This document shows, piece after piece, positions 14,190 to 36,643 of a DNA stretch of 64,000 nucleotides; position 1 is the first letter of the stretch; every line of letters begins with the position of its first letter. The notes beneath the pieces were generated by a model. That model made no database searches. It saw only the letters and a list, made by a program, of their open reading frames with translations, and was not told the origin of the DNA. The DNA comes from Chlorokybus atmophyticus (taxonomy: Eukaryota; Plantae; Mesostigma and Chlorokybus algae): contig RHPI01000385.1 of assembly GCA_009103225.1 (NCBI GenBank), forward strand, positions 120,175 to 184,174. The letters run 5' to 3'. Made by a program: the position numbers and the translations under genes.

Positions 14190-15656
14190 GCTATGTACTA
14201 TGTAAGTACTACTATGTAGTACACATGCGTATGAAGCGTGCATAGTGCGAATCAATCACGCCCAACTTCATTGTTGTTGGAGTGGACTCGAGACTGGTAA
14301 TGACGCACAATTTCTGGCTAGGCCAGTATAGAAGGGTAGGTCCCTTTTGCTGTACAGTCGCGTGCAAAACCCCTCCCTCGTGTAAACCACTGCCAAGACC
14401 AAAAAGGGAAGCAAGGTGCTCTGCGCTGTTTGCGCGACAGTCATGTGGCGAATGCAACCGTCCTCCTGGCACATGTGGGGCTGTATATAGCAAGCAGGCA
14501 TGTCCGCCACAAAGACATCATTGATGCAACGCAAGACTCCGCGTGCCAATTTTGACAGCAGCTGTGTGTTGCCTTGCCAGCTAGTAACCTCAAATAGTAG
14601 CCTCAATTGCTGCATGAACTCCAATTCACACGATAGCAATTAGCCATTGGCTAAATGCACAGCTACATTATTTTACCTAAAATGCATATGCGCTGCCTAT
14701 ACAGCTCGTCGGCTCGGCAGCAGTGCGCAAGTACAAGTTGTTCAACAGAAACTTTAGCATGTCATACAGGCACTGCGCAGTGAATGGGCGCCAGTCATCA
14801 TCATTGTTTGAGATTGCTGCTATTGTCCAGTGGTGCTGCACATATCTATTTAACTGTACATTCACATGCGGACACGTTGCTCGCACCTTCGCCGCTTGCA
14901 TGTGAAAAATAGCGTTCACTAGGCGCGTCATGCGCTGCAGTAACTCAGCGGGCTGTATCTTTGTATACAGGGTGGTGAAACCCCATATTTGCAGCTGCAC
15001 GTGTTGTCGCTTGTCACTGATTGTGCTTGTGGTGTTGAACACTTTTTGCAATCGGCAAAATGCCATTGTGTCCGTCATGATCCCATTGTTGCGTATCGCC
15101 GGCAGTCCTACTGTCTTTGACCAAAGATCGTGCCACACTTGCTGCATGCATTAGTACGCCCCCCNNNNNNNNNNNNNNNNNNNNNNNNNNNNNNNNNNNN
15201 NNNNNNNNNNNNNNNNNNNNNNNNNNNNNNNNNNNNNNNNNNNNNNNNNNNNNNNNNNNNNNNNNNNNNNNNNNNNNNNNNNNNNNNNNNNNNNNNNNNN
15301 NNNNNNNNNNNNNNNNNNNNNNNNNNNNNNNNNNNNNNNNNNNNNNNNNNNNNNNNNNNNNNNNNNNNNNNNNNNNNNNNNNNNNNNNNNNNNNNNNNNN
15401 NNNNNNNNNNNNNNNNNNNNNNNNNNNNNNNNNNNNNNNNNNNNNNNNNNNNNNNNNNNNNNNNNNNNNNNNNCCCTTTGTCAGCCGGATGCTGGCATCT
15501 AACAATGATGTGCGCGACGCTGCTGTTATGAAACGCGGCTTGGGCAAGTCGTTATGCCGTTTGTACATCATGTATATATGCGGCAATCTTGCTAATTATC
15601 GTGACATGGTTGTTTGACAGGCATGTGCTTCGTTCCATGGAGCATAGTGCTACAGC
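14190..15656 (-). mobile_element. Penelope-like element RT (Naiad/Chlamys-type), degenerate; 3' half left of the giant insertion
   Basis: Fragments LPHIYMMYKRH..PKPRFITAAS..LTK, FTTLYTKI, MLKFLLNNLYL, AVHLAN..ELEFM, RCINDVF (RYIDD equivalent), LYSKRD and LGVIDSHYARFIRMC occur in the correct order, with stops, frameshifts and an assembly gap. Confidence 0.75.
15165..15473. other. Assembly gap (N run)
   Basis: Run of N flanked by C tracts. Confidence 1.
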
Positions 15657-15661
15657 TGATG

Positions 15662-15726
15662 TGTCAAGGTGAAAACCTTAATAAGGGAAAAGCCCTTGAC
15701 ATTGTTGGCATTTCTCCCCCGTTACA
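15662..15726 (+). repeat. 5' LTR, internally deleted (65 bp)
   Basis: 15662-15701 is the near-exact reverse complement (about 38/41) of 36308-36348. 15704-15726 matches the 3' LTR end at 36618-36638. Confidence 0.65.
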
Positions 15727-15728
15727 TT

Positions 15729-15740
15729 TGGTATCGGAGC
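15729..15740 (+). other. Primer-binding site, initiator tRNA-Met type
   Basis: TGGTATCGGAGC (consensus TGGTATCAGAGC) lies 2 nt after the ...GTTACA LTR end. Confidence 0.8.
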
Positions 15741-16493
15741 AAGGTCCTCCTTGTGGGTGGGCCTTATTGTGTTGTGGTTATTTATTGTGGTAGAGCAACG
15801 CCGCCAGCAAGCCACTAGGCCGCTAGCGGCGCCGCCGTTCACATCCTCCAGGTCAGAAGCCTGGCAAGCCATCTACTGCGCAGCCTCCTGCGCAACAGCC
15901 TGCGACGCAGCAGGTACCATCGTATCGGCCGCCGGACTGACTGCCGCGCGTCAGTTCCTGCCCCCTTGCGGTCGACCGCCGCCAGGCCAGCGGCAACCAA
16001 AGCCTGGCAAGTCGCCACGACTAGCCAGACTTTCAACATAAACAAGCAACAAATTAGCTTGAATAGGTTGTTTTGTGCTAATCTGGCCCCTCTTCCTTGT
16101 GGAGAGGTGGATGTGCGTGAGTGTTTGCTGGCTCGCGTGCATTGTGTGCGTATTTGTGCACAATTAATAGCAAAAAGTGCCTCTCGAGATAATCCCCTCA
16201 ATAATTGAGGGAGCCTCTCGGATGTTCCTCTGCGCTGCAATAGAGCACTTGGTCATTGTGTTGCTTTGCTTTGCATCGCAATCGGTGACAGCACTCACTC
16301 ACACGTTAACACCATTCTTTGAGTGGCATTACACTCAATTTTACAACACGAGCAGCCCCAGGCATCGTTGCAATATGTTTTCCCTGCCAGCCGACGAAAT
16401 ATCGGCAGCGGCCGTGCACCTGAGGATATTAATTTAGACTGTCGTGGCTCAGTGCGCCTGTAATCTCGATACAGGGACGTAATAGTAACTTCC

Positions 16494-16885
16494 GTTACTA
16501 TCAGGCCCTTTTTGTTACAATTCGGTCTTTAACAGTTGACTATGCCTAGTTAACAGGCGCTTGTTAGTTACCTATCAGGCCTTAACAGGTGACTTTATAT
16601 AATTAACAGGCACCTGTTAGTCACACATCAGGCCTTAACATGTGACTTTATATAATTAACAGGCACCTGTTAGTTACACATCCGGCCTTACGAGGTGACT
16701 ACAACTAATCAACGGGCACCTGTAAGTTACACATCAGGCCTTAACGGGTAATTACACCTAATTAGCAGGCACTTGCAAATTACATATCAGTCCTACTTAG
16801 GTGACTCAGCCTATGTGACAGGCACTTGCAGGTTACACACCAGTCCAGCGCAGGCGACTAAGCCTAATTCACAAGCACCAACTAG
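16494..16885. repeat. Tandem array of about seven 53-bp units, each with a TAACAGG-CA-CCTGTTA palindrome
   Basis: Unit starts at 16551, 16604, 16657, 16710, 16763, 16816 and 16869 (period 53). Units diverge progressively to the right. Confidence 0.9.
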
Positions 16886-17239
16886 GTAATTATTAACAAA
16901 ATAAGGCATTCTTTAACAACTGAAGGTGATCAATGCCTAACTGTCGTCATATGTGTTTGCATAGCTTAACCACACGCGACTGTTACTGACTGCCAGCATT
17001 GTTATGTGCCTGTGTTGTGTACATGTACCTGAAATGTGTACAGTGCCTCTCAGTCACTTGCCAAGGCTTGTAGTTCAATTATGTGACTTGAATGCAGTTC
17101 TGTTGTATATCATAGGGATGCAAGTATTGACATGCATGAGCATAATAACGATTGACTAAGCTGGTTTAAGATGCACAACACTCAGTCACAAGAGCCTTGT
17201 AGCTATGTACACTACCAGCTAAACGGACTACAAACTGCG

Positions 17240-19073
17240 CTACAGCTCCTTTCTATCATCGCTTTGCTCGTCATCATGGAACAAAGCACCATGCGCTGGG
17301 GCCTGTGGAGGAGACACTGGAGCTTGCTCTTCCTCCTCAAACGGTTGTGCCAGCCAATCAAATGCCGCTTCTGCCTCAGCGAGCGTGTCACGAGCTGCTG
17401 CCTCTTGCGGCCGGCGCTGATTGGGATCTTTCATGTATTCGACACAAGATGCAGTGCGGCGTTTCACAAGGGTGAATGGCTGGAGGGCTGCGTACCGTTG
17501 CCTCATCTCCCGCTTCATTAACATGAGCATGGTGTTGATTTCGCTAAGATACTCTTCATGTGTGTCGATGCTGGCAGCTAGAAGAGGGTCTCCATCTTTG
17601 CCCTTTATGATGCGCTCCACCTGCGTAGTTTACAAGCATGTCTTAATGGCGTCGAAAGCCACTATTCACTGCAACGCGTCTGCAAGCCTGTAGTTTAGGG
17701 CTACAACATTCCTGAATTGCTAATGATGGATTTCAGAGTGCTCAGCGTAAACAACAGGTATGCGAGGTGGTTGACTGTCAGTTGCCGGCGACCAGGTGTA
17801 GTGACGGCGTAAGACCAGCATTGCACGATCATTTGCCAGATTATGGGATTACCCCATTCATGGAAGTATTTCCTCCGCTCCGGGTCTGCATTGTCGGTCA
17901 CCTCAAATCTCCGCCATGACTTGTCTGCGACGGTCATGTAAACAAGGCATCAGTCACAATATGGATAGTTCAAGTTGAGCCTGCACCTGGCTAGAATAGT
18001 GCCTTTGTCTTACTTTGGAGCGCGCTGCGCATCTGGGCTTTTGGGGTCTCGGGGTCCATTAAGGCGTCGATGTGCCTGATTGAATCTGATTGCGTTACAA
18101 TAGGCGAGATGCGTATGTGTGTATGGAGGCTGAGTAAGAAGGCAGTGTTGCATAGCAGACATGGTGGTGAGGGATCCAACTCACTTGCACTTGTTGCTGT
18201 TAAACAGTGTCCACTTGTACTCCTTCTCAAGGACATGCTTGATCTTGGTGACGTTCTCAGACCCGACCTGCGTAGCTTTCTTCAAGGCGACACTCCAGTG
18301 GAAGGGGCACTCCTTGGGCGTCCAGTACACCTCATAGAACTTGGCCGCATCGGCCTCGTCGCCATGGTCGAAGCCAACTACCTGTCATCGGCAGGTTGGT
18401 CAGTGTCACGGTGCAGTGCGGTAATGAAGCATTCACAGCACCTGACACATGACGTTACGAATAGTGTCCTCCTTGGGATAAATGTGGCTCTCTACCCAAT
18501 GGCCGTTTATGATTTCGACGACGGCATCTCGCAAATGCTGACCACAGAAGAACAATCCATTACACACATACACACAGTGTCACAGTGTCACACAGTGCTT
18601 ACCTCGCTGCCACTCTTCCACTTGCTTGGGGAAGGGTTGCTGACGGCCGAGGTTGCCACGTCACGGCCAAATGCGTTTGGGTTGGGGGTTCCAATCGACC
18701 CTCTACAAGCACAACCACATGAGTCATGCTGCCAGCCATGAAAGATGCAACCCTCACAGTTGAGAAAGAAGAACAACGTGCACAGTGTATCCAGAACGCA
18801 CGCAGTGAGTCACTGTGCCAGTCTTGAAAGAAGCAAGCATCCAAGTTGGAAGTTGAGCAAGAAGCAACGTGCACAGTGCATCAAAAACGCATGCAATCTA
18901 GCTTGCCCTTGCGACTGCGGTGTCAGGTGGAGTTGTTGTGATGTGCTGGGCATCAGCGCGGGGTCTTGCTGCGATTGGTTGGCGACGGTTGCCTGGTTGA
19001 ACACTGGGGGCAATGTGGACAGTTGGCGCCGACCTCCACGACGAAGTGCACCTACGGATGGACCACGAGGCAT
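17240..19073 (-). pseudogene. Intron-containing orphan cargo gene A (unknown function, probably slightly degraded)
   Basis: GT-AG introns restore one frame over consecutive exons: ...PSKWKSGSE|HLRDAVVEIINGHWVESHIYPKEDTIRNVMCQ|VVGFDHGDEADAAKFYEVYWTPKECPFHW...NKCK|HIDALMDPE...LQ|NKSWRRFEVTDN...; last exon VERIIKGKDG...DRKEL*. One junction near 17650-17700 could not be resolved without a stop. Confidence 0.55.
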
Positions 19074-19459
19074 CTCTCTAACTGATAGTCGGTTGCCGCC
19101 TGTTTAGCTGATAGTGGCGCCTCCAACGCTGCCGCCGCCGGTTGGCCCGCCCGAATGTACGAGGCGCGAAAACGAAAATGAGGCGGTTTTGAACGTCTAG
19201 TGTCCCGCACTAGAGTCGCACTTGTAGTGCGTCCTTGCTCCTATGGTTGATGGTACGTCTTATGCATTCGTGCCATCCATGCTTCGTACAACCATTAATA
19301 CCAATGGTTGTGTCGTAACATTTATGGTACGACAGAGGCATCTCTCGTCCAACCCCAACCATTGCCGTACAATGGCTCAATGAATGGTACGACAGAGCCA
19401 TTGTACAGAGGCATTGCTCAGCCCAAATGGGAGTTAGCGTGCACTCACCCAAACACGCT

Positions 19460-22400
19460 TCATTGATGGCCGGATGATGGCACGCAGGGGCACTAGGTCG
19501 ATGATGGGTCGAATGTTAGGCATAATGGGCCTGGGTTTGAGTAGGAGGCGGAGGACCAGGAGTCGGAGGCGGCGGCGGTGGCGGCGTGGCACATCTTGCG
19601 AGAAGTTGTAGTCGTAAGAGTTCAAGCAGCGAAGCCAGCTACTACCGGGCGCCACGTCATGGATCATGGCAGGCGTCAGCAATGGGGCTGTCCAACATGC
19701 ATCACCAATATTGGACAAACCAGCAGGCAAGCCATTAAGGACCATCTTTACACAGAGAGCTGCTTGGTGGCTCGCTTTCTGCAACAAGGAGTGGATTACG
19801 AGCTGCACTCCTTGGAGCCTCTTATCAGAACCATGCGAGACCAATTGCGGCTATGGGAACAAGCACAAAGGAATGCAGAGGTACGCTCAACAGTCACATG
19901 CATTTCCTTGCAAGAGCAATTTATTTTTTAGCGCAGTCCATGTGATACATGTAGCGTGGCTGCAGGCCTCCACTATTCACCCATACCCACCCTACAGTCA
20001 AGCCAACATTGCGAAAGCCAGAGCAGATAGACAGAGCTGGGCGGTATGTTGTTGCCAATCTCGCTGTGCATGTTGACTGCATGCACCTCCAATGCATGCC
20101 TACCTTTGCATACTAGGATGTGCGTGAGCGTGCGAAGTCGCGCGCGCGTGCCGAACGAAGTAGGCTGGGTTTGAGCACATGAGCGTGTGGCCATTTGTCC
20201 GGCATTCAACCAATAGTGCATCAACTAGCAATGACGCAATCCATGCAATCATTTGTGCATCAACCAGCAATGCCGCAGGTGACTGTTCGAAGCAACCAAC
20301 TGATGACGGTGTGACGCAGTTGACTATTGCAATTGCAGTGTCGCAAGCATGCAGCTAACCCACATGTAATTGGTTGACAGCACCACAGTACACTAGGTCC
20401 TGTTGGAGCTCCTATGCAAGCCTGGCTTCAATCCCATCAACTAGTCCTTCAATCCCACTTGCTGATGTGCGCGGCGTCAATGCGGCATCAGTTTAATGTG
20501 CATGTTGGCCTGTTGAATCCCGACATGTCCATTGGGGCAGTGGCGCATAATGTGCCCATGGCTCACGAGCTCCGTGACGAGTCTGCGATCGAGGGTGGCG
20601 GGGAGAGTGCACCCAATACCACATTGTCAGCCCCCATGGCTTCCCCTGCTCCATGCAGCCCACGGGCCACTGAGGTAAGTCGCTGCCTTTTTTGCTCGTG
20701 CCTTGGTAACAAGTGCGTTAGGCACTGCACAAGCTTATATTCGTCCTTTGCAACATTGTGAGCCATCTCATCCTGGGTCCTGTATACAACCCCCCTTGCT
20801 GCATGCACAAGTGGTCTCACCTGCCGCTCTCTTGCTCCCCTCGCAGCCAGAGCGCAACCACCTTCCGCGGCACCAGTCCTTCATGCACTGCCATCTCCTC
20901 CACAAGAAGCACCGGTGATTGCGGGGCAACAATCCTTCTTGCCGCCACCGGCGAGACCACAGCACAATGCAACAATCGATGTGGCTTCTGCACCTACCTT
21001 ACCCCACCCGCTGCAAGTTGAAGCCGGCAGTCTGCCCCAAGCTTTGGTACTTTATCAGTCACTGTGACTCTTGCCGTCCACATTTGGACACACCATTTGA
21101 GTGCTGTATGCGCATGCAGCAGGGGTCACCACCTGCCAGCGAGTCATCAGAGGAGCTAGACGCAACCCGCATACGGCCATCAATCATGTTAGGTGGCCAG
21201 CTCGCCTCATGGGACCACTTCAATGCGCCAACGGATGGTAATTGCTTGTATCATTGTGCATTTCGCGCCAGGCCATCCATAGCGCAAAGGGTCCTGGATG
21301 ATCATAAATGCCCCAGCTCGAGCAGATTTTGGGCCATGCTGGACACCATGGACGACGACGGCACGGGGGACACTCTCCGCAAAATCACCGCCAAGGTTGT
21401 CAATGCAGGCGTGGCGAGCAGAATCCTAGACTTCTGCAGAGCCACTGGTGCCGCGGGAGAGATGGCGCAGTATTATGACGAACTGCCTGCGACCATGTTG
21501 GCTGATGTCAATTGCAACATTGACATAGCCATGACCAAAGTGCAACAGATCGTGCGGAGAAAAGATGTGTGCGTCAAGCACCTGCAGATGACCATGTTTG
21601 CCAACAAGCTGGGCTTGTTGATTGGTTGCGTGACCGTTTAGCGCGAGCATGGGGAGTGGATGCCATGGCCCAGCAGCGCAGTTTGGGTTGGAAATAAAGA
21701 AGCCCCCAACTCAGTCCTGGTGGTGGGCAACACTGCTCCTGATGAGCCAGAAGCACACTTTTGGCTCCTCAAGCCTGCAAGCACCGAACACTGGTCGTGG
21801 CCTATGCATGAAGTGCCACCGGAGGTAACAGACCAGATCGGAGAGTGGCGGAATGGCGTTGCACAACAATTCAGCACCCTCCCTTCATGCCGCGGAGACT
21901 CACTTGCCACCGCACTCTAACCATCTGGAGGCATCTCCATCAAGAAGCAGCTGTAGCTCGCCCTCTCCCTCTAAGCTTGCCACATTGATCCCAGCCTGTC
22001 TTGTTGGTAAAGAGATTGATCGAGGTGTCCTGAAAGCTGCGCTGAAAGACAAAGGCTTCATGCGCGACCTCATGAAGCAACATGAGGTCGTAGAGGAACG
22101 GGAGGCAACCAACAAGCGCAAGGCTGTGGAGCAAGAAGAGAACGCCTTACCTCCTCTCAGTGACAGTGCCACGGAGAGCGCCTGCCAGGATGTGCAGGTT
22201 GACAAAAAAAGAAGAAGAAGGTTGTTGGAACAAAGGACGCTGACAGGATTAAATAAGGAAAGGTGAGGCATTGTTACAACGTTAGAAGAAGCACAGCGCC
22301 TTGAAGCCTCAATGGGGCTGACTGTGTGTCCTGAGTAGGCACAGGCGGGTTTACAGCGTCAAGTGGCTGCTCAGCATCCTCCAGAGAGACAGCCGGTGAG

Positions 22401-23363
22401 GCACGAGCTGCCTAAGCTCAAAGCACCGACGCGCAGACGCTTTGAGGGGCTGACTCGTAGTGCAAAGGAGTTGATCGCCCTGCAATACGCCCAAGACGCG
22501 CTGCATCACCGCATGCGGCATGCCTCGAGGTGGGTGACGAAAGTATGCAATAAGTGGGAGCAAACGCGGAGAGTGCGGTCTGAACAGACCTCTGAGGGTT
22601 GGCCATGGTTGGAACCCATACACGATATGGACCTCCGTAGTACGTTGTTGCCCCTCGCCGTCCTCGATATGATGGTGTTGTTGCTGCCGCAGATGTGCAA
22701 GAGCTATCCGCGGAGCAAAATTTCGACCTGCTGCAGCAGATGTACCTGTCGATGTCGACTAATGCGGGTTGAGATGTGTGCCACTACCTAAGCAAACATA
22801 CTGGGTGGCAAGTAAAACCATTCGAGCTGTACTTGGCATGCTTTGACTGGCAGTGGCTGTATGTCATACGGCACGTCGAGCTGATTCTGTGGAAGCGCGA
22901 AGAAAATGACGATGCGGGGGAGTACACGAGTGACGACAGCCATGTCGAGGGCCTGGATGAACGCATGCTTGACGAGACCATCAAGACCAGCAGGTGGTGT
23001 ATGGCGGCAGATGGGCAACAGGTGATCAAGCAGGCAGTGGAGCGTTATGCTGCGCCATTCAGATGGGAGTCGCTACGCCTGCGACGCGATAACAGAGTTT
23101 GGTGGCAGAGGCAGCTTGCACACCCGCGTGCACCATGTGTGCTGATTTGTCGCATTGAAGAGCCACCCCCCCCAGCGGATGGGGAGACGCCCTGTTGCAA
23201 GAAAGCGATGTGCCATGTCTGCATCATAGCACATCAGAAGACTGTGGCAAACAAATCAAAGAATCTACAAGCGTGTCCATTCTGCAAGCAACCTCACCCG
23301 TTTTGGTCGCCACGCCTGATGCAAGACGCCAACGTGTCGGCGGTGATTTGGCCCCCGTCTTAA
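19460..23363 (+). pseudogene. Cargo gene B: C2HC Zn finger - OTU-like cysteine protease - charged coil - C-terminal RING finger (degraded, possibly more than one gene)
   Basis: WGCPTCITN..IKDHLYTESC (about 19685-19765). OTU motif FNAPTDGNCLYHCA (Cys codon 21243) with distal AHFWLL His (21756) in the same frame across one TAG (21639). RING-like TPCCKKAMCHVC...CPFC (about 23185-23290). Confidence 0.6.
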
Positions 23364-23826
23364 TGCCAATTGTGCATGTATTGTAGTTTTGTGTTGGCTT
23401 CCTGTGAACCATGTAGGTACATGTATAGTTGCAGCATGGTGCATGGTGCACCAGAGATCTGCTGTTGTTAGAAGCATTGGCTGTACATGTGTATGATGAC
23501 TGCCCGGCGCATGAGTCAGTGCATGGCTTGCATACCTCGCTGGTTTAGAGCGTGGTTGACAGCAACAAACTCGGACAGCGCTCTGGGTTCCATGGCATGA
23601 CAGCACAGTATTACTCTACGATCGTGGTAGTATGCGAGTATCCTTGTACTGTAGTACCATTAACAGATGGAGTACCATGCATGATACTGCAATAGCGTAT
23701 CAGGTACAGTCGTGCTTCACTTGAAGTTTGACCCATTTATGGTTCGTAAGCTGGCAACCCTAAATTGATGCCCATACCCTAAAGTCTCGCTCAGTTTGTG
23801 GGCAGCCGTGCCAATTCCTATTTTAC

Positions 23827-25554
23827 ATGATGTCGGCGGCAGCAGTTGAATCCCCCTCACCTAGGAGACCATGCTTGGTGTGCCCACAATGCAATGCGTA
23901 CGTATGTGCCAATGGCCGTAGGCAGCAAATGCGAGCACACTTGACCGAATGCCAGCGAGTGCAGACAGTGTGCCACGGTTTTAGTGCTGCTTGCTGGCAT
24001 CACACCACACACAATGTCGACGTGTTTGGCTGCCGCCTCGGCCAAGTGCTGTGCAAGGAACCCGAGTTTTTCCATTGCGTGCAGTGCGTGTGCGAATCGT
24101 GCTCGCGCTCATGCTTCGAGTGGCGAGGGGAACCCATGCGCTTCTTCACATGGACAACACCGGGACATGTGGTTAGTGGACAGGTGGTGGATGCTGTGGA
24201 GGTAATCCACAAGAGTGGACCGCGACGTATCACTGCATGTTATGTTGGGCGTATGCTTATTTCATGCATGTTGAAGCTGTTGTCGCATTCAGAGCAGTCT
24301 TGCACGGTGTGGGCGTGGGCAGTTCCATCCCCTGGCCGCTGTAGAGGAGGCAGACCATCGATTGTTGGACAGCGCACTGCATCGGCTGCGAAAGGTAGTT
24401 AAGTTGGGATGCGAGCAACTGATCGGCGTGAGTGTCATGATGCATTAGCCGCTGAATGGGGAATGGTATGCGGGCGTTGTGGAATCATTCAAGCAAGCGT
24501 CAGGTCAGCATCGCTTCGTGGCGCGCGAGATTGAGGACGCATCATATATGCATGGTGCAATGGAAAATGTCTTTGCAGGGCAGCACCATACAGTATTCGA
24601 TGACGGTGATCGACCACAAACCATCAACTTCAAAGGGCACAACGTATTCGCGTACACATCAGTTGACGGGGCACGCCATGTTCAGCGCGCCGAAGGGGAG
24701 AACGTCAGTCGCAAAGTAAGCCCGGACGGCATCATTGCGAGTCCCTGGCCAGCACCACGGCCAGCCTTGACCACATACACGCCATTTGACAACAAGCTTG
24801 GACGCACACGCAGACCAAGGGCACTCGACCTATTCTGCGGCGGTGGCGGTGCCAGTGTCGGTCTATACCATGCAGGCTTTGACGTGACCGGGATGGACAT
24901 AAGTCCTCCTCTGAGTACCCGCTGCCCTTCATACACCGCGATGTATGCACCCTGAGTGCAGAAGAACTGAGCAAGTACGAGCTCATTTGGGCCAGTCCAC
25001 CATGCCAGGCCTATTTAGGTGCTATCTCGGCACCTCAACGGGCGGCACATGGCACATCCAGGAGACACCAGGATATGATACCGCTCGTCCAACGTCTGCT
25101 GCTTGCAAGCCAGGTCAAGTTTGTGATTGAGAATGTGCCAGGAGCAGCTTCCTCATTCAAACCCAATCTGTCCCTTTGTGGCACAATGTTTGGCCTATCA
25201 ACTTTCCGACACCGTCTGTTTGAGACACAACCAATGGTAGCTACCCCACCAGCACGCTGCTCGCACACGGGCAAGGCAGTTGGACTGCTATCGCCGCACC
25301 TGTCCGCTAGCGCGAAGAAGACAATTGTGACATCAAATGCGCCGCAGCAAATGTACCCGGTCTATGGCCTTCCAAGCACCAGGGGCGGCATTGCTGCGTG
25401 GCAAACAGCGCTAGGAGTGCCATGGATGACCTCGGCCGTTACCATAGCGAATGCAGTTTCTCCCGCAATGGTGGAGTGCATAGGGCGTCTCATGCTTGAA
25501 ACAATGGGTATGCGCTGTGACTACCCTCATGTGTCATGGAACTATGAGGCTTGA
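23827..25554 (+). pseudogene. Cargo gene C: Cys-rich region - Tudor/Agenet-like domain - C5 cytosine DNA methyltransferase of compact phage/actinobacterial type (one TAG, at least one frameshift)
   Basis: Motif I ALDLFCGGGGAS, II/III GFDVTGMDI..EYPLPFIHRDV, IV IWASPPCQAY, VI VIENVPG, VIII LCGTMFGL..FRHRLFET, X PWM..TIANAVSPAMVECIG. A 1-nt deletion in a CCT run near 24910 separates motifs I and IV. Upstream in the same frame: LIGVSVMMH*PLNGEWYAGVVESF...QH...TVFDDGD (Tudor-like). Confidence 0.85.
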
Positions 25555-25753
25555 GTGTGGTGCACTGTATTGATGCTTAATGCCACACGGCGGATTGATT
25601 GTTGAATGTTGCATGACACATTCGATTGTGGTGATAGTTGTGCAGTGACAGCTGCCCGGTACTGTACACGTCCACATGAGTCTTAACATACGATTAGCAG
25701 TGCCTAACTGACTGATATGCTCCAAACTCAGAGTAGTGAGACAAATACATGTG

Positions 25754-28700
25754 TCACGTGGAAGTGCAACGAACGTTCCCCCAATACTTGCCCTCTTGTA
25801 CACGGGCGCTGTCCTTGTCAAACATGGGGAGCAGCTGGACAATGCCTTTTACTTGCTCCAGAGTCACGACATCGAGATGTGGACCCCCTCGACGCTTTTC
25901 CCATTCCAGAGCGATGCACTTTGTGTCGCTCGTCACATCGAGCTTCGTGTACCAGCGGACAAACACGACCTCCTTCCACACGCGCTCGCCGCTACCACCC
26001 CACACCACCACGCGCAGAACAAGGAGTGCCCGAGCCCACCACGTCACATACACACCGTCCTCATCACCTTCCAACTCAAGTGTAGCGAACCAAGGCAGCC
26101 CATGGAACATCCCAGTTGCGCGTGCCATGCTGACTCCAGATGTCATGTACACCGCTGCGCCTCCGTTCACCACGCGAACGTCACGCCACCTGTCGGCCAA
26201 CTTCAGTTGTTCCACCCTCAACCAGTTGTTCAGGGTGGCAGGCAGCTTGTCGGCGAATGGAGTCTTCACGGCGACTTGGCGGCTACGCGCAGATCCGCTC
26301 TAGTACAGGCTGGACTCCCTCTTTGTCAGCACATCCATCCGTAGCAACTTGTCCGTGTTCTCTATTACATTACAGCACTGCTGCCGCGCCTGCGCCATGA
26401 CCGAGCGCATCTCGAGATCCACGACCATGCCATCCTCTCTCACATATTCCGCACAGCTCCATGCCTTCAGGATACGTGCTTGGTAGTCCCGGTTGTTGCC
26501 ACCACGCGCCCACCGTTTGATGTTTTGAGCGTGCGTCTGCTCCATACGGTTGGCGCGAACCAGTCTGGGTGTCCACTGCTGACAATTGCCGGCCTAAAAT
26601 AAGTGAGATGATGCATCCTCTCGATCTTCCAACCTGACTTCTGTGCAGAATATGACGACAGTAGCGGATGCAACACTGCAGCTTTGAAGGCAGCCAGCTC
26701 GTTGTCGGCTGTGGTCAGGGTCTCTATTGTGTGTTCATGCGCCTTGAGCAACTTCTTGTTCCATTGGGCAAGCGATGCGGCTGCAATAGTGAAAAAATCG
26801 TTGCCCTCACTGTCGAGCAGCAAACCGTCTGCAAGGACCGGCAGTAGCTGCAGCACCGCCGCTTTCTCGACCATACCTGAAAGGAGTGGTCGTACAGGAA
26901 AAAATCTACTGTGCTTGTGGGTGCCTTCAAGTGCGGAACCTGTAAAGTCGCTTTGCATGCATTCAGCCTGTGCAAATCTGCTTATGAGCACGTGTCGTTG
27001 GCTTTTGTGTTCAACACAAAAGCAACACCAAAGACGTGCTTGGCCTGCAGAACCTGTCTTGTGGATGGACGCATTCGTTCTTTTGCAGCGTCGTACAAAG
27101 CAGCAAGCAAGTGGTCAATGATGCCTCCCAGCACATGCATTGCGTCAGGGGCAAGACGAGAGTAGCAGTCAGCTCCCGGCACCCGCGACTGTCGCCAACT
27201 CCACAGTGCATTCCGTTGCCAAACCCATTGCCTGGTTTCACGGAAAGCCATTCATCCTTACAAATGCCGGTAATTTGACCATTACCTCCTCGACATGCAT
27301 GGAGTGCTGCTCTTTGAAAGCCTTGGCTGTCTGGCGTGTATTTTTAACACCGCTATGCAAGTCCGCCCGCAGCTGACATATTGCTGGTGTGTAGAAGGCC
27401 TCGGTCCACAATTCCCGGTCCTCATCCATTTCCAACAGAGCTGATTTGGTGACGAGACAAACATTGCAAGGATGTCGTGTTTGGTTGCCCGACACAGTGC
27501 GTGCGAGTGTGGCAGTCTTCTACTACACGACAAGCTCAAATGCTCTACTGACAACATCCTCCATGCACTTTGCTGGCAGGCTACATCCGGTTACAACCAT
27601 GCATGCCCACTACCTGCAAATCGCTGATGTAGTTGGCAAGCGCGGGAAACACACGACGCTCGATGCCATTCGGGTCGATAAGCTGCAGACCTTCCAAACT
27701 CGGCCGCTTCACATCCCCTAACACTACATCCAAAGCGTCATGAAAAATCTCACGTTTCTGAAGGGAGAACGATTCCTTGCCCTGCGCCCAGGTGGGATGC
27801 CCGGCGACTGTGTGAACCACCGGCAGAAGCGCTATCATAACAACCCCCATGTTGCTAGCATACATGTCCCAATTGTTGGCAAGCGATGCCATCAGAGGGT
27901 AGCCAGAGCGCTTGCCCGCGCTGTCCAGCGTGGTCTTGTCACTGTACACAATGGCAGGCGCCAACTACGACGCTTCCCCCACCTCTCTCCTCAAATCCAC
28001 CTCCACATCCTTTCACCAATCGCCCGTGGAAGGATGGCCAAAGCTGTGCTCGTCACCACTGTACTGAAGATTGAAGCCATTGGCGGCATGTGGATTGCCA
28101 TACAACCACGCGAGCCATACCTGCTCCGACCAAGAACATTAACAGGCATGCTGGCCTCAAAATAGATACTGCATCGATACTGCACTGGGTACTGCATTTC
28201 ACAGACCTTGGACGGCATATATGTGACGCTGATGTCCTAATCCTCGGGGTCTCCAGGCTTGCGCAGGTCAGCCGTCACGTAGTTCTGATATGGCAGCACA
28301 CTCGCATGTGCATATGTGACATGGCTCTAATGGTTGAAGCACATGCACCGCACACCGTGAACAAACCTCAGATTGAGAGAAAGCAATTGTGGTCCAGAGG
28401 TAGCTGGCCACATGCACACCGGTCTCCCAGCTCTTCCGTCAGGAAGTGTGCACATCGGATGCACTTGATGATCCGCCCCATGTCGGAGGCTGACAGGCTT
28501 TGGCCGTTGTTCCACTGCACGAATGCCACTGCAAGACCATGCTCCGAGCCATACCACCTGGATTCCGATGCGTGCGAAGGGACGCCTCCACTTCCATGTT
28601 GGTGTGCCACAGGTTGCTTAGGCACACGCACACATTGAAAGCCCTCGTTCACTTCCTCCTCCTCCTGTTGCTGCTGTGCGTGTGTCTCCTGGAGGAATCC

Positions 28701-29038
28701 TTCAGCATTAAGTATGTGCGCATCCTGGATCGAATCCCCCGACTCAACACTGACCCGCATCGTACTGTCATGGACGCTGGCCGACATACAGCTTGATTTG
28801 CTTGCACACCCTGCTGCTAATGATGTGCATGTAGACCGAGCTGCATGTGGCGAAGCGCATGTGGCAATACGAACAAAGGACTCCCATATCTCACTACTAA
28901 CGTCAACACAGGTGCCGCCAATGCAACCTGCATCATATCCAGCAACACGCACACCCGCCGCCGCCGCCGCCACCGCCACCGCCACCGCTACCCTTGCATG
29001 CCAGAGGCGGGAAACTTGGCCGCCACTCACTGGCTCCA
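25754..29038 (-). mobile_element. Plavaka-type (CACTA/EnSpm-related) transposase, degenerate
   Basis: Ordered motifs: LYGNP..., HPSTGDW*K (TGDWW), PAIVYSDKTTLD..SGYPL, ALLP, FHDALDVVL, DPNGIERRVFPALANYISD, PCNVC, LAPDAMHVL-GGIIDHL, HTIETL..L..F, WKIERMHHL, EQTHAQNIKR..RGGNNRDY, and C-terminal RATGMFHG..W..VRWY..GIVQLLPMF. Multiple frameshifts and stops. The 5' end is approximate. Confidence 0.8.
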
Positions 29039-29325
29039 TTGTACCATTATTATAGTACGATCGAGCCATTGCACGTCTAGGGTGAGTCTCTGCATGTATA
29101 TCCTGATTGAACCGTTTCAATGATACGAAGATGCCTTTGCCAAAAGGTACCATTGAAATGGTACCTTTGTACAGTGGCAATGGCAGTTCGTACCATTGAC
29201 AAGTGCTGTGCCTGCGCATGAAAACACCATTGATAGCTCCGCCAAGCTATGCTCTTACAGGGGCGTGATGCCGAGGGTATGTGGCGTTTGGTGGATCGTT
29301 GGCGCTGCCAGGGGCGTAGTGGGCA

Positions 29326-30214
29326 TTGTGGTCGATGTCCGGGTTGAATTCCATGTTCGCACAGGGCGGGCAGGGTGCCGGAGGGGTGTCCTTGGTGTCA
29401 AACCCCACCATGCCTACCAAGGGCACAGCCAATGACAACAGTGACTCGAGCGATATCTTACAGGGCTCCCCCTCCGAGTGGGCAAAGGCACACCACAATA
29501 CTGCCTCTAAGAACATCCGACCCACCAGCAGCTGCGACCACGGCGACATGATTGAAGGGACCAAACAAGATTGGCATAAACAAAGTGGGTTACGATGTGC
29601 TGTTAATGCCACATGCTAGGGTTCTTTTATCTTGCACATGCACAGCCTCAAGTATCTTGCACATGACATACACTGTCAATACCACCACATGCACACCCTC
29701 ATGCACAACCTCCAGTGTCATGCACATGAACAGCATGCCCAATCTCGCAAATGCACAGCCTATTTCTACTTGCGGGAGCTCACAAGCCGCAAAAGCGAAG
29801 CTGCGGAGTACCACGAACGGGTAATCCATGACCTAGTTTAAGGTTTCCAGCGGTGCTTAAGCGCTATGCTTGCAGATTGCCATGTTGGTCAGAGTAAACC
29901 GAGAGCAGCGTGGGAGGCTGACTGTTTGCGTGGCGGAGTGCAACAAAGCGGAAGACGAGGTAAGCATGTGTAAGCTGATGGGCTAGTCCTCTTGCAGCAC
30001 GCCACTCTTATAGCATTACCAAATGCAGGTGGTCACTCTCAAAGCGACCATCAAGCGCATGCGCGTGCACAGCGAGGCGCTGACATTCAAGCTGAAGGAC
30101 GAAGTAGCCGCTGTACTGTCAGCGAGCCAGGCAGCGGATGAAGATGACTCCGATGTTGAAGCAGAAGACTTGTTGGAGGAGGACATGAGGAGAAGGTTTG
30201 AGGAGGAGTTCTGA
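29326..30214 (+). CDS. Intron-containing orphan cargo gene E (coiled-coil, acidic C-terminus), divergent from the transposase
   Basis: In-frame GT-AG joined exons AYFYLRELTSRKSEAAEYHER|IAMLVRVNREQRGRLTVCVAECNKAEDE|VVTLKATIKRMR...EEDMRRRFEEEF*. The 5' exon is uncertain. Confidence 0.5.
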
Positions 30215-30853
30215 GGCAGGCACCATGGGTTGACAAGCTGCGCATGAGTGCCACAGCTAGACTCAATGTTATAGGGTAGTTTTATGCGCAAGTCAGCTGC
30301 TCAGTTGCAAGTGGACATACTCTCACCACTGCCGGTACATTGTATATATTGTGGGCTTATAGGTGCAAGACCAAACAATCAGTCCAAGGTTTGTACAAGC
30401 TGCATGGCATGTTAGTGTTGGCTTACGGCAAGAATTGCCAACTTTTGTCAAATGGCAAGGGTCACATATTAACAGCTATGTAACGGCAAAGAAACTGCCG
30501 GCTATTGATGTCAGCTGCCCGTAACTACCGGCTAATGGCCGTCTGTGCACATCGAACAAAGGGTAACAAACCTCGGCCGGTTAGTGCCACTGACAACCAC
30601 TTTCGGCCCGCGGCCGTCTGCGTCAGTCCGCTCAAGCCAACGGCAAACCCAACAGTCCAAAAGTAACATTTTAGGCAGCGGCAGGCAGGCTCAGGCAGGC
30701 TCAGGCACCAGTCAGTCCCTCAGTTCCTAGTCAGTCATCGTGTAAAATTTGCAATGATAAGACTTGTTGTTGATTGTTGTTGCAAGCTTTGCTTGCACAA
30801 CTCTTTGTGCTTACACAAATTCGTTGTTACAAGCTGTATTGCTGTGTTCAAAC

Positions 30854-32220
30854 ATGGCAAAAGGCAAGTCAAAAAAGACATCTCAGCGCACTGAGTATCC
30901 CCCGCTACGCAAGTAGAGGGGCAACAAGAGGATACAATTGACCCACAGGATGAGATTGAAGGGGCCATTCACCTCCTTCCTGGTGAACGGTTTGACAAAC
31001 TTGAACCCGCTAGGCAGCAGCGCCTTATACTTGATGTAGAGAAGCGGTTGAAAGATGTTGAACTGGGGGCAACCCCGTTAAAGTTGCCTGCAGACCCTAC
31101 TCAGATTGTGCATGTTGATATCAATGAGCCTGGGGAGAAAACTACACAGCAACAACCTGCACCAGCAGCTACTCGCACCACTTCAGAGGGAGCTCAACAA
31201 AACCAACTTTTTGTGTTGCACCCACTGAGACTAATGATGACTCAGAATTTTCTGCGCGTCCTTGACGCTGCTTTTAATGGCCCGCGTTGCGCATTACAAT
31301 CTTTAGCACAGTAATGTCGCCATTAGGAAGCGTTCACGCGAGGCGTTGCATCTGGATTGGAGAATGCAGAGTCATTAATCTCTCATCTGTCGCAGCAAGT
31401 TACGGCATTGCGCTCTGCACCCGCCACAAGCAGTATGTCTGCCAATGCCAAGATGGCATTGGTCAAGCCATCCAAGTTTGATCCCATTGACAGGAAGACT
31501 ACTGTTAACAAGTGGATTGTGTCCATTAACAAGTGGTTGGCCTTAGCCAATGACATGTCAGGGGGGGACAACTTTAACATTCATCTCAATTTGGCACCAG
31601 CAGAGGTGCAGATGCAGCATGAGAAGGGCAAGTTTGCAAGTACCATGCAAGCACTGCTGAACTACATGCGCAGTCACTACCAGAGTGTTGCGTCTTGGGT
31701 GGAAGCAGATGAGAAGTTGGCCCAACTTCGAATGGGCAACAAGAGTGCTGATGTGTATGCGCGCGAGTGGCGCCTGTTGGTTGATGCAGTCAACCAAGGA
31801 CCACTTCCGTAAGATGCGGCTGCACAGATGCGCTCCATTCGCAGTGGATTACGCAAGAATCTCGTCACCAGCTTGCAGCTAAGAGGGGACAACACTGTGA
31901 GGGGGCCTGGGGATCTGGATGAGTACCTCAAGGCTGTCATCAGTATCGACCACTCTCTACGATCTACCAAAGCAACTCACTCCTGAGGATACAGCTGCAG
32001 TGTCAGTGCAAAAGTAGAAAGAGCGCACGGACGGCAAACGTGAAGCACCTGAGCAATCCAAGAGGTCCCGCTTCAATAAGCCCAAGATGACTTGTGCTTC
32101 TTGCAGGAAGCCTGGTCACACGGCAGATCATTGTTGGCAGCTGCACCCTGCGCTTAAGGCCTCTGCGTCTCAAATGGTCAAGGGCAAAGGCCAGAAGAGT
32201 CAGCTGCAGCCGTAGGGATT
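30854..32220 (+). pseudogene. Gag of the Gypsy element, degraded
   Basis: KPSKFDP..W...AxEKLAQLRMG..ADVY retrotransposon gag-like core and a CCHC knuckle CASCRKPGHTADHCWQLHP; several stops and frameshifts. Confidence 0.75.
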
Positions 32221-32224
32221 AGCC

Positions 32225-35200
32225 ATGGCCACTGTGCCAAGAGACATTGGTTTGGACATTATATCTGTTTTACGTATTCATGGTATTGCACATGCTTGGT
32301 TTGATCATCATACGTTGCCTGTATTGCGGCGTGATGAACCAGTGCATGATGCGCGTGTGTTACTTTCATGCAAACCAGCTGACTTAGCAACTAATTTAGC
32401 AGAGTTTGCTATGTTTCAAAAACATCATCATGATATCATAGGGTATGTCCTCATGCCATGCTATAATGACTCATGGTTCAAATGGACATGGACATTACAT
32501 AAAGACCATATGGACACCTTGTGGCTAAGTTCAAGCGGACAACCGACATGCCTACTTCCATGAAGTTGGTGGTGCTTCCGCCGCACAGTGACCATGTGTA
32601 ACGATGCTCGTGCTGATTGAACACCTCACCAGAGCTACCAGCCTGATGAACGAGCTAGGATGCAACTGAGCACACTATGGCGCTATCACATGTGCACCTA
32701 CTCGCAATCAATCAACAACAGTATTCGCACTGTGGGGTGAACACCTTGAGGGCAATGTAGGCGCCTCAAAGCTTGTGGGGGCAGTCTGGTCCGTGCAAGA
32801 GCTGTAGCAAAAGCAAACCCGCGCGCACACTCGTACCGTGGATGCAAACTATACAAGCACGCACACACCGTCCACAACAAGGGCAAATAACTTAATTTCC
32901 GCTTGGTCCAACCTCCCTAAAGGCAGTATACTAGCTACTTATATACCTAAGAGGCTACACTATCATTGTAGAAGTTAACTATGTTGACTCCACCGCGAAC
33001 ACATGCTCGAAAACACGTGAATTAGCTGTTTAAACTGCGTCGGCGCATAGAAACTGTCAACGGTGGTCAAATGTCAACGCATAACGCTCGCGTGACCTTT
33101 TACACGCGCGCCCTTGTTGTATTAATAACCCGGCGTCTTGGGACTTTATATAAGCATAACGCGTCAGGCCTGTTAAACAGGGCTGTTTTGGGGTAAAAGG
33201 GCTAGAAACGTAGCTTAAAAGCAAGTGTAACACCAACTTTGTTACACCATGCGCTTGTGGCCGCATTTGAAGGTGATCTTATTCCCTTACTATGGACCTT
33301 TCAGGGTTCTTTAGCGGGTTATTATGCTTCATTTGTGTTGGACACCGCTGCTACGCATAGCTTCATTAATCATTTCTTAGTGAAACGCTTATCGTTGGCT
33401 ACGTCACAAGCAAACATGCTGTTGCATGCCGCAGCGCGTAACGCTTTGCCTCTATATGGCGTGGTCAATGCATGCGCATTGGTGCATACTCGGGCGTGTT
33501 GAAGCTGTTAGTCACAGATCTTGGGATTGACAATGCTGATGTTATACTGGGGCTTGGTTGGCAACAAGCTGTGCGTCTGACTCTAGACACATTTGCAAAA
33601 ACATGTTCTGTACGCAAAGGTAAGCGTAAAGTTACGCTCACCACGCAATTGCGACAAACTTTGCCTGAGCCTGCAGGGCTTTTTGATGCTTTGCAAGCCA
33701 CACGTGTGTATCGCAGCCATAAATTAATGGCCTTTTGGGCTCATGTACATGCTGCTTCCTATGCCAACAGCGCTGCAATAAATAGCATTCCTGAAATGCA
33801 ACAAGTGGTGAATACATTTCATCGATGTTTGCTGACGCTTTGCCGGAACTACCACCGGATAGAGGTATTGGTCATACCGGTTTTATTGAACCAGGATTTG
33901 CCCCTCCGTCACGACCTACCTATAGGCTAAGTCCTGTAGAGAGGGTGGAAATGGAAAAGCAGATCACTGAGTTATTGGCCAAAGGTTTCATGAGCCGAGT
34001 AAAACTCCATACGGCTCTCCCATTCTCTTGGTGAGAAAGAAAAACGGGAAGCTACGCATGTGTGTGGATTATTGTGCATTGAACAAGATCGAAAAGTCAA
34101 AGTTAGGTACCCTTTACCACGCATTGATGACATGCTGGACTCATTATCGGGGAGTAAGTACTTTACACCACTCGACTTGACTGGTGGTTGTCATCAGATC
34201 CGGTTGCATCCCAATGATGTAAATAAGAATGCTTTCAGAACGCCGATTGGCCATCATGAATTCAAGGTGTTGCCGTTTGGTTTGACCAACGCACCCGCAG
34301 TCTTTCAAGCCGAGATGAATGTTGTGTTTGGCGACTTGCTTAGCAAGTTTGTAAAGGTGCACCTGGATGACATCATTGTTCATAGTAATGACTTGGATGA
34401 ATATCAACAACATGTGGCAATCGTTCGTGAGCGGTTGCAAAAGCACATGTTGTTTGCCAACCTCAGCAAATGCAATTTAGGTAAGCAGGAGTTGCCATAC
34501 TTGGGGCACATTGTTGATATTGATGGCATCAAGCCTGATCCTACCAAAGTTAAGATCGTGGAAGATTGGCCTACGCCTCGCAATCAGCATGAGCTGATGT
34601 CATTTTTGGGCCTGGCTAACTACTTTCGACAGTTTTTATTCTGTTACAGTTCATTGACTTTGTCGTTGACAACATTGTTGCGGAAAGGACAGTGCTTTAC
34701 ATGGGATGCAAAACACGACGAATCCATGCGCCTGATCAAGCGTGCACTAATATCAGCACTTGTACTGGTAATGCTGGATTGGAAGACACAATTCACCGTG
34801 ATAAGTGATGCTTCCAAGTTGGGGTGTGGGGCGGTGCTCGTGCAAAACGATCGTGTGTGCGTATGAGTCTCGCAAGTTCATTCCGGCTGAGGTAAAATAT
34901 ACCACTACTGAGCAAGAACTATTAAGGGTGGTGCATGCACTGAAAACGTGGCATTGCTATCCTGAGGGCGTACACTTTACAGTGATAACAGACCACAACC
35001 CTCTCGTGTTCTTACAGACTCAGCCAATGCTTTCTCGTTGTCAGGCACGCTGGAATGAGATTTTGTCTCATTTTAATTCCGAATGGTGCTATCGTCCTGG
35101 TCGTACAAATGTGGCGGATCCATTAAGCTGCATACCGGTGATGATTAACAGCATTCAGGCAAACGTCAATGCCGTTGTCGCTGTTACACCGGACATGTCA

Positions 35201-36167
35201 TTCTTGTCACGTGTCAAGACGGGGTACAAGTGTGACTCTTGGTTTAACAACCATGAACACGTGACGGGCTTTGAATTGGGGGATGGACCATGGTATAAGG
35301 GCAATGCTCTTGTCATACCTGATCATGATGGCTTGCGCATTGAGTGTGTTACTACTGTGCATGACCCCCCACATGCTGGTTATTTTGGGCGGTTCAAGAC
35401 TACTGCTGCAACTCAACGACACTTTTATTGGCTCGGGTTGACAGTGGATGTTGATAGGTATGTTGCAACATGCGATGCATGTCAGCGCAACAAGCCGAGA
35501 CGGCAAAGAATGTCCGGCCTTTTACAGCCATTGCCCATGCCATCGCTCAGTTGGGAGAGTGTCAGTATGGACCTCATCACTGCACTGCCTGAGACTACCT
35601 CAGGTTATACAGCGATTGTGGTGTTTGTAGATTGTCTGACTAAGATGGTTCACCAAGTCACGCACGCAACAAGCACGTGAGTGCATGCGTGCGGCGCAAG
35701 ATCAATATAAAGTGTATGCTGATGAGCATCGGCGTAATGTTGAGTTTGAAATTGGTGACATGGTGTAGCTAAACACCAAGTACTTATCACTCAAAGCAAA
35801 GGGTACCCGCAAACTCATGCCACGCTTTGTGGGACCGTTCGCAATACGCGAGCCAGTTGGCAAACTTGCATACCGGTTGGAGTTGCCAGCATCGATGGGA
35901 AAGATACATGATGTATTTCCTGTGAGCCTCCTTGCGGCCTATCGTGCTGATGGACGGACTCAACCACCACCTCCTGCTGTTGTCTTGGATGATAGTGCGG
36001 GCTCAGAACATGAGGTGGAGAATATACTTAATCATAGAAAGGATAAATGTGGACGCACATCTTATCAAGTCAAGTAGAAAGGGTATGGTGTTGAGCACAA
36101 CACGTGGGAGACCAAAAGGAACTTGACAAACTGCCAGCAGGTTCTTCGGGATTACAACTCTCGCTAA
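32225..36167 (+). pseudogene. Pol of the Gypsy element: extra N-terminal domain - protease - RT - RNase H - integrase (core deleted) - chromodomain
   Basis: Protease VLDTAATHSF. RT YPLPRIDDML..DL..G.HQI..F.VLPFGLTNAP..LDDII. RNase H SDASKLGCGAVL..EQELL..TDHNPL. Integrase HHCC and SMDLITALP, then jumps to YADEHRR..PRFVGPF. Chromodomain EVENILNHR..YQVK*KGY..HNTWE. Confidence 0.92.
32597..33246. mobile_element. Solo LTR (650 bp) nested in pol
   Basis: TGTAAC...GTTACA termini with 5-bp TSD CCATG on both sides (32592-32596, 33247-33251). Excision rejoins the frame LVVLPPHSDH|ALVAAFEG..LDTAATH. Confidence 0.85.
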
Positions 36168-36295
36168 CGTGTGTGCCCACCGCACTACTGACAGGGCGTG
36201 AGGCAGCATGTCTTTAATGTGCAACCCTCGTCCCTCTTCGAAATCGGATCCGGCTGTTAGATGATTTACTAACGGCGCCGGCAGCCACCTTTTTC

Positions 36296-36304
36296 GAGGG
36301 GGGG
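36296..36304 (+). other. Polypurine tract
   Basis: GAGGGGGGG lies 3 nt before the TG start of the 3' LTR. Confidence 0.8.
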
Positions 36305-36307
36305 CAA

Positions 36308-36638
36308 TGTCAAGGGCTTTTCCCTTATTTAAGGTTTTTACCTTGATATCATTATATATGACCTTAATTGGTCAATTATATGCCAAGCTCTATTGGTTCC
36401 TCGCTCTATGCTCAATTAAGACCCTTATATGAGTCTTATTCATGAGTCATAACGGGTGATATCCGCGATTCTTACCCTAATTGGTTGATATCAACCAAAC
36501 TGGTCAAAGCTATGGCTGACAGTGAGTGAGGGAACGGGGGTTCTTGACATGTCAGTCACGGTGGCGGCATGGGTAGGGTCGTTGGCGTGGGTGTTGGGGT
36601 AGAGGATTAAAGGGGGAGTTGGCATTTCTCCCTTTACA
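36308..36638 (+). repeat. 3' LTR (331 bp; two modules: TGTCAAG..CTTGACA 36308-36549 and TG..TTACA 36550-36638)
   Basis: Follows the PPT, shares both terminal segments with the left terminus, and is followed by the TSD. Confidence 0.7.
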
Positions 36639-36643
36639 TGATG

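Follow-up and report, generated by a model that had tools for sequence, protein, structure and literature searches.

Transposons nested within long terminal repeat (LTR) retrotransposons are a general pattern in plant and fungal genomes. Among DNA transposons, the published Plavaka families have three to five defined terminal bases, with termini of the form TGT..ACA or CATCA..TGATG, and generate target-site duplications (TSDs) of 2-3 bp; Plavaka and related families also often carry DNA-modification cargo, namely TET/JBP genes (PMC12730594). Among retroelements, KnitGypsy-Dnmt3 of Klebsormidium nitens and the DNA methyltransferase (DNMT) retrotransposons of Symbiodinium hold the DNMT within the element's own open reading frame (ORF), and these enzymes are of Dnmt3 type or other eukaryotic type and are under purifying selection across many copies (PMC5890265). 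We analyzed a locus that shares features with each of these systems, located in a 64,000-nucleotide stretch of contig RHPI01000385.1 (hereafter the window). Here, a Ty3/Gypsy retroelement of chromovirus type spans 21 kb, and the roughly 15 kb between its primer-binding site (PBS) and gag (about 15741-30853, hereafter the cargo) includes a Plavaka-type DDE transposase gene and a C5 cytosine DNA methyltransferase gene. A first-pass annotation of the same DNA had proposed that the entire 21 kb had moved as a single unit, and had named as the alternative a Plavaka transposon that inserted later into the leader. Our analysis finds the alternative to be the likelier of the two: with moderate confidence, we interpret the 15 kb as the result of a later event, in which a Plavaka-based transposon inserted into the leader of a retroelement that was already in place.

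Integration of both outer ends as one LTR element at a single site is well supported, because a matched 5-bp TSD and TG..CA termini occur together with a properly placed PBS and polypurine tract (PPT). By direct reading, the element runs from a TG at 15662 to a CA that closes it at 36638, and it is flanked on both sides by TGATG, a duplication within the 4-6 bp characteristic of Ty3/Gypsy elements. With the boundaries preset by TG and CA, a 5-bp match between the flanks has a chance probability of about 1/1000. The PBS lies by the 5' LTR and the PPT by the 3' LTR, as in other members of the Ty3/Gypsy group. The TGATG pair, the TG..CA termini and the PPT and LTR at the right end were all read directly where the first-pass annotation had placed them. 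Its larger claim stands in part: the outer ends integrated together, and the movement of the cargo along with them is not shown by these ends.

The transposase that the first-pass annotation had listed among the cargo belongs to the Plavaka type. Pfam PF18759 matched the gene with E=6.6e-17 (62.2 bits against a cut-off of 26.3), placing the domain at 27617-27961. Alignments with full-length relatives (840-2125 aa) extend from 28114 to 25820, and the gene as a whole, from about 29246 to 25757, takes in an upstream ORF. The gene is broken: its catalytic core holds two to three in-frame stops (at least two), and the further frame changes may be introns or frameshifts. This transposase lineage is sparsely represented, with 46 matches at E<=1e-3 among 1.84 billion representatives. 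The closest of these is ENA ERZ27253056, a metagenome contig of 552 bp that matches the window at 28285-27713 with 73% nucleotide and 66% protein identity. Because its Plavaka-core ORF is uninterrupted, a living relative of this sparse lineage exists somewhere. A more distant, full-length match was located in assembly record GCA_003427395.1, which we take to be that of the charophyte Chara braunii. Just upstream of the probable transposase start, at 29629-29761, a 20-nt motif rich in TGCACATG recurs three to four times.

The transposase gene is antisense to gag-pol and convergent with the methyltransferase gene, their ends lying about 200 bp apart. That the cargo encodes a DNA methyltransferase, as proposed in the first-pass annotation, was established through its relatives: 1581 were found at E<=1e-3, the best at E=7.5e-35, with 35-47% identity and most of them containing PF00145. 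Homology extends over the whole PF00145 catalytic domain, and the alignment requires one frame change, no stops and no intron-sized gap. Relatives of 216-248 aa align nearly end to end at 24779-25527, and the gene therefore corresponds to a complete short enzyme with one frameshift. The region of the SAM-binding motif matches methyltransferases in PDB, and motifs of the FCGGGG and PPCQ type were seen in the translation by eye and taken as a lead. When the Pfam methyltransferase model was applied to the separate pieces of the gene, E<0.01 was not reached. The N-terminal stretch that begins at 24449 is uncharacterised.

The best relatives of this methyltransferase are short metagenome enzymes of about 200-390 aa. 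The closest carries a methyl-CpG-binding (MBD) domain, and the second closest is encoded on ENA ERZ28548091 (5.3 kb), two genes downstream of a major capsid gene of a giant virus (NCLDV); a comparison of that contig with the window gave no match beyond the single homologous gene. In each of four metagenome contigs, a convergent gene comes 1-5 bp after the close relative of the methyltransferase, an arrangement shared with the window, and the convergent neighbors in these four contigs are unrelated to the Plavaka transposase. The contigs that encode the closest relatives are, as a whole, compact and prokaryote- or virus-like, and the neighboring genes are unrelated. Judged by these relatives, the enzyme appears to be of the short type found in prokaryotes and giant viruses.

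Together, these observations appear to favor a later insertion, since the cargo is centered on a DDE cut-and-paste transposase that is antisense to gag-pol and convergent with the methyltransferase gene. This interpretation is also favored because the cargo is host-like in composition, unlike gag-pol, and because its two identifiable genes are less broken per kilobase. Specifically, GC content is 0.54 in the cargo, as in the host flanks, and 0.48 in gag-pol; frame breaks per kilobase number 2.6 in the transposase gene, 1.8 in the methyltransferase gene and 4.3 in gag-pol. The difference in break density has p of about 0.02 by a crude Poisson comparison of small absolute numbers. A similar arrangement is known from fungal Plavaka/KDZ elements, in which a Plavaka DDE transposase likewise stands beside the gene for a cytosine-modifying enzyme, and which likewise are large and have almost no terminal inverted repeats (PMC12730594). 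They differ in that the fungal cargo is a TET/JBP eraser, whereas here it is a C5 methyltransferase, a writer; in addition, the host here appears to be a green-lineage eukaryote rather than a fungus, and the published termini were not found at significance.

We infer the following order of events. A Ty3/Gypsy element of chromovirus type would have integrated once, creating the TGATG duplication; this copy is now old and dead, with a 5' LTR rearranged into a stub at a hairpin-forming quasi-palindrome, frameshifts and stops in gag-pol, and a missing integrase core. On this reading the cargo is foreign to the retroelement and would have arrived in the leader afterwards, by one or more insertions. 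The main insertion would have been that of a Plavaka-type (CACTA-related) cut-and-paste transposon, which may have brought the DDE transposase, the convergent short C5 methyltransferase and several of the orphan ORFs as parts of a single DNA transposon.

Several results weigh against a later insertion. No significant pair of terminal inverted repeat (TIR) and TSD bounds an inner element. Comparison of the left and right leader regions by blastn-short, an exhaustive scan for TIR and TSD combinations, and a local alignment between the leader's two parts, judged against shuffled sequence, each yielded nothing above chance; when the termini published for Plavaka A and B were sought, candidate pairs appeared at chance frequency only. 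For the best pair of the Plavaka-B type, 17948 with 29980, the probability of a chance occurrence is about 0.2, and the right end of this pair is crossed by a candidate spliced ORF. The motifs of the 53-bp tandem array near the left end are not mirrored to the right of the cargo. The first-pass annotation had reported that an inner TIR and TSD were absent, and these scans agree. Neither a sister copy of the Gypsy element nor one of the cargo, either of which could order the events, was found in the databases searched: self-comparison of the window revealed no such copy, the RT search, which covered proteins of 158-502 aa, gave relatives of at most 50% identity, the protein search of JGI metagenomes was empty, a search there with the LTR pattern gave a single chance match, and exact look-ups of two window ORFs returned no match. 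Furthermore, the two to three stops in the transposase core imply an insertion that is not obviously young, and the contrast in break density is a weak point, as elements can be defective before they insert. The lack of TIRs and TSDs is itself weak counter-evidence, because Plavaka families have few defined terminal bases and TSDs of 2-3 bp, such that a lone decayed copy need not be expected to retain recognizable ends. The locus resembles the usual nested insertion in that an old LTR element with a matched TSD is interrupted in its non-coding part by another mobile element; it departs from that pattern in that the inner ends cannot be defined and the insert is about 2.5 times the size of the retroelement.

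A single TSD pair that encloses everything, with inner ends that could not be found, would also fit retrotransposition of the whole 21 kb as a unit, either as a member of a giant Gypsy family to which the cargo is integral or from a progenitor that was already nested and was copied through RNA. Most cargo ORFs, among them the long orphan chain and the methyltransferase, are oriented like gag-pol, which fits this possibility, and some retrotransposons are known to encode a DNA methyltransferase (PMC5890265). We nevertheless consider it unlikely. An antisense DDE transposase would be useless to a retroelement, the composition of the cargo and the heavier damage to gag-pol argue against it, and a second copy was found nowhere in the searches made. 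We know of no precedent for a 15-kb insert between PBS and gag. The comparison with known elements points the same way: this locus resembles KnitGypsy-Dnmt3 in that a Gypsy-type element encloses a cytosine methyltransferase gene, but here the gene lies 5.3 kb upstream of gag rather than inside gag-pol, as in the known cases. The transposase gene separates it from gag, so that it is a separate gene beside a transposase and not part of a retroelement ORF. In further contrast to KnitGypsy-Dnmt3, it is frameshifted, is known from a single copy, and appears to encode a short enzyme of prokaryote or giant-virus type. Still less probable, in our estimation, is the specific claim that the genomic RNA of a chromovirus carried the 15-kb module of transposase, methyltransferase and orphan genes and that, after reverse transcription, it integrated as a 21-kb unit. 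If true, a chromovirus would serve to transport both a DNA transposon and an epigenetic writer, and a 21-kb retroelement would matter much more; the basis for it is one decayed copy.

The neighborhood of the two cargo genes bears on another possibility, that the cargo accreted in several unrelated steps and that transposase and methyltransferase are neighbors by accident. Capture of host DNA, small insertions and rearrangements would fit a cargo that consists mostly of orphan ORFs and is host-like in composition, and would leave no element ends to be found. In addition, two genome records contain distant transposase relatives that lack a methyltransferase neighbor; comparison of the cargo with these two loci revealed synteny limited to the single homologous gene. 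The unrelated neighbors of the closest methyltransferase relatives, described above, agree with this. On the other hand, the two genes are tightly convergent and both are foreign to the retroelement, and DNA-modification cargo is known to occur beside Plavaka and KDZ transposases (PMC12730594). We therefore regard piecemeal accretion as quite improbable, and the insertion of a Plavaka-based transposon as the better account of why these genes are adjacent.

The window, a scaffold that was probably assembled from short reads, contains N gaps, one of which lies 184 bp outside the left end of the element. This raises the question of whether the interior is an assembly artefact, in which part of the 15 kb was wrongly joined while the ends come from one locus. 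However, positions 15474-48344 are free of gaps, such that the element and its cargo lie in one contiguous contig, and the window lacks internal repeats able to mislead an assembler. Moreover, the matching ends would require two compensating misjoins, and an artefact is accordingly very improbable. A second gap of about 300 N is located at 48345-48635, and there are single N positions at 358 and 62825.

Apart from its insert, the Gypsy copy is old and dead but otherwise ordinary. Pfam recovers the pol domains in the Ty3/Gypsy order of protease (below its cut-off), reverse transcriptase (RT), RNase H and integrase, and the retroelement domains are confined to 33.3-36.2 kb. The description of this region as gag-pol with a chromodomain in the first-pass annotation holds for pol; the gag region is without a Pfam match, and the chromodomain is partial, with 15.9 bits for Pfam Chromo against a cut-off of 25.1, a match limited to profile positions 2-22, and one in-frame stop inside. 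The integrase catalytic core (rve) was undetectable by Pfam in gag-pol, and because the zinc and SH3 domains lie too close together to accommodate it, the core was presumably lost by deletion. Alignment with relatives indicates two to three frame changes and one in-frame stop between RT and the integrase zinc domain; across the 5.3 kb of gag-pol, a minimum-cost frame path requires at least 23 breaks, about half the number for shuffled sequence. Relatives of gag-pol, from a search with the RT piece that covered proteins of 158-502 aa only, such that full-length pol proteins of sister copies fall outside it, are at most 50% identical and are mostly plant chromovirus-type pol fragments. The element resembles plant and algal chromoviruses in its domain order of protease, RT, RNase H, integrase zinc domain, SH3 and a partial match to the chromodomain, as well as in its TG..CA LTR, PPT and 5-bp TSD. 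It differs from them in its rearranged 65-bp stub of a 5' LTR, in its missing integrase core, and in its low identity to relatives.

Shared terminal sequence, also proposed in the first-pass annotation, was found in a modified form: matches between the ends comprise an inverted 41-nt segment and a short 3'-end segment, and the left LTR is a remnant. Ty3/Gypsy elements have two direct LTRs; here, the right copy is complete, and the left copy is a stub that retains the proper TG and CA and is mostly missing, with about 265 bp of the LTR absent. Self-comparison revealed no further LTR copy in the window. Stub positions 15664-15704 match the start of the right LTR in inverted orientation (36346-36305, 95% over 42 columns), and in direct orientation at the LTR start, only the two 8-nt arms of the quasi-palindrome agree with the stub. 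About 22 nt at the end of the stub correspond in direct orientation to the 3' end of the LTR; of these, 15 nt match exactly, as does the terminal TTACA. The quasi-palindrome has imperfect arms in the right LTR and perfect ones in the stub, and both versions fold as hairpins better than shuffled sequences do (z of about -3.2). The inverted match also extends 3 nt past the start of the LTR, into bases that come after the purine tract (chance 1/64), and these three bases adjoin an LTR solely at the 3' LTR junction. The perfected arms and the inclusion of 3 nt from the PPT side suggest that the stub arose by a template switch at the hairpin, and not by simple decay, the 3-nt overrun being only suggestive. 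The rearrangement may have occurred during DNA synthesis or after integration, either of which fits one copy, and it is a small curiosity in an otherwise ordinary Gypsy element. Dinucleotide bias is strong throughout the window: TpG+CpA reaches about 1.5 times and CpG about 0.7 times the expected frequency, in flanks and cargo alike, and the 3' LTR departs from this bias with TpG+CpA of 1.0.

Table 1. Features of the retroelement, its cargo and the adjoining left flank (window coordinates)
Feature	Position	Strand	Remarks
Assembly gap, 309 N	15165-15473	.	left flank, 184 bp from element
Left TSD, TGATG	15657-15661	.	read directly; identical to 36639-36643
5' LTR remnant, 65 bp	15662-15726	+	TG, 41 nt of inverted LTR start, about 22 nt of LTR 3' end (terminal ACA included)
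PBS-like 12-mer beginning TGG	15729-15740	+	2 nt past the left terminal ACA; read directly
Tandem array, 53-bp unit, about 6-7 copies	16507-16877	.	
Orphan ORFs, possibly two exons of one gene	17243-17938	-	ORF tables; no Pfam family
Chain of orphan ORFs, including Cys-rich stretches	17995-24399	+	ORF tables; no Pfam family
C5 cytosine DNA methyltransferase gene	24449-25554	+	methyltransferase domain 24779-25527; one frameshift
Plavaka-type DDE transposase gene	25757-29246	-	Pfam and relatives; 5' limit uncertain, may reach 29615
Small ORF with acidic tail	29882-30214	+	candidate GT..AG intron by eye; no Pfam family
gag-pol with C-terminal chromodomain, heavily broken	30854-36167	+	Pfam
Aspartyl protease	about 33305-33469	+	Pfam, below cut-off
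RVT_1 (RT)	34093-34515	+	Pfam, E=4e-25
RNase H (RT_RNaseH, RT_RNaseH_2)	34702-35074	+	Pfam, above cut-off
Integrase zinc domain (Integrase_H2C2)	35330-35500	+	Pfam, above cut-off
Integrase SH3 (SH3_Tf2-1)	35820-35945	+	Pfam, E=4.5e-14, above cut-off
Chromodomain, first half	from 36012	+	Pfam, E=0.013, below cut-off
PPT, 12-nt purine run	36296-36307	+	abuts 3' LTR; read directly
3' LTR, 331 bp	36308-36638	+	TG..CA; quasi-palindrome at start; unique within window
Right TSD, TGATG	36639-36643	.	read directly

The transposase and the methyltransferase are the only two protein families verified in the cargo, the remainder of which consists largely of orphan ORFs (Table 1). The first-pass annotation's spliced orphan genes are present as ORFs without Pfam families, their splicing being putative, and long plus-strand ORFs are far commoner than expected by chance: five of more than 200 codons fall within 17995-26341, three of them within 17995-24399. 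Frame breaks over 17995-25554 number half the shuffle count. The ubiquitin-pathway domains also listed in the first-pass annotation could not be reproduced. An ORF within 20919-21638 has an OTU-like Cys motif by eye, and its identity as an OTU deubiquitinase was not supported: there was no Pfam match to an OTU domain even at E<=10, the homologue search was empty, the single match in PDB had E=0.87, and the single-sequence structure model was unusable (pLDDT 33). Similarly, a Tudor-like reader domain noticed by eye upstream of the methyltransferase found no support in Pfam or PDB. No further Pfam domain was detected in 67 small ORFs of the cargo. Rfam and tRNA scans were empty, the window being without a tRNA gene, and the initiator tRNA-Met to which the first-pass annotation had assigned the PBS is accordingly a putative primer.

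The first-pass annotation had also described the two flanks as parts of one Penelope-like RT. Stretches resembling RT and GIY-YIG on the minus strand of the flanks were seen by eye and are a lead; the flank ORFs on both sides have no Pfam family even at E<=10, and their search of PDB gave no relevant relative, such that neither database supports this identification. Farther out, a plus-strand ORF of 977 codons at 4431-7364, by far the longest in the window, has no Pfam family at E<=0.01. Host-like sequences on the minus strand include a metacaspase (Peptidase_C14, E=1e-32) at 58472-59527, a Castor/Pollux channel fragment (E=2e-23) at 46766-47557 and an ankyrin-repeat ORF at 38137-39090. Diverged tandem repeats with a period of about 210-240 bp occupy 62807-63826, where minus-strand ORFs overlap them. 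The metacaspase, the Castor/Pollux fragment, the ankyrin ORF, the plant-like relatives of pol and the transposase relative in the putative charophyte record hint at a green-lineage-like eukaryote as the host.

If transposase and methyltransferase share one Plavaka transposon, as we favor, this cargo would be the writer counterpart to the TET/JBP eraser cargo of fungal elements. Such a writer would sit in a green-lineage-like genome, with the nearest relatives of its enzyme in prokaryotes or giant viruses. The locus would thereby be informative about the ways in which DNA-modification enzymes are gained and disseminated by mobile elements.

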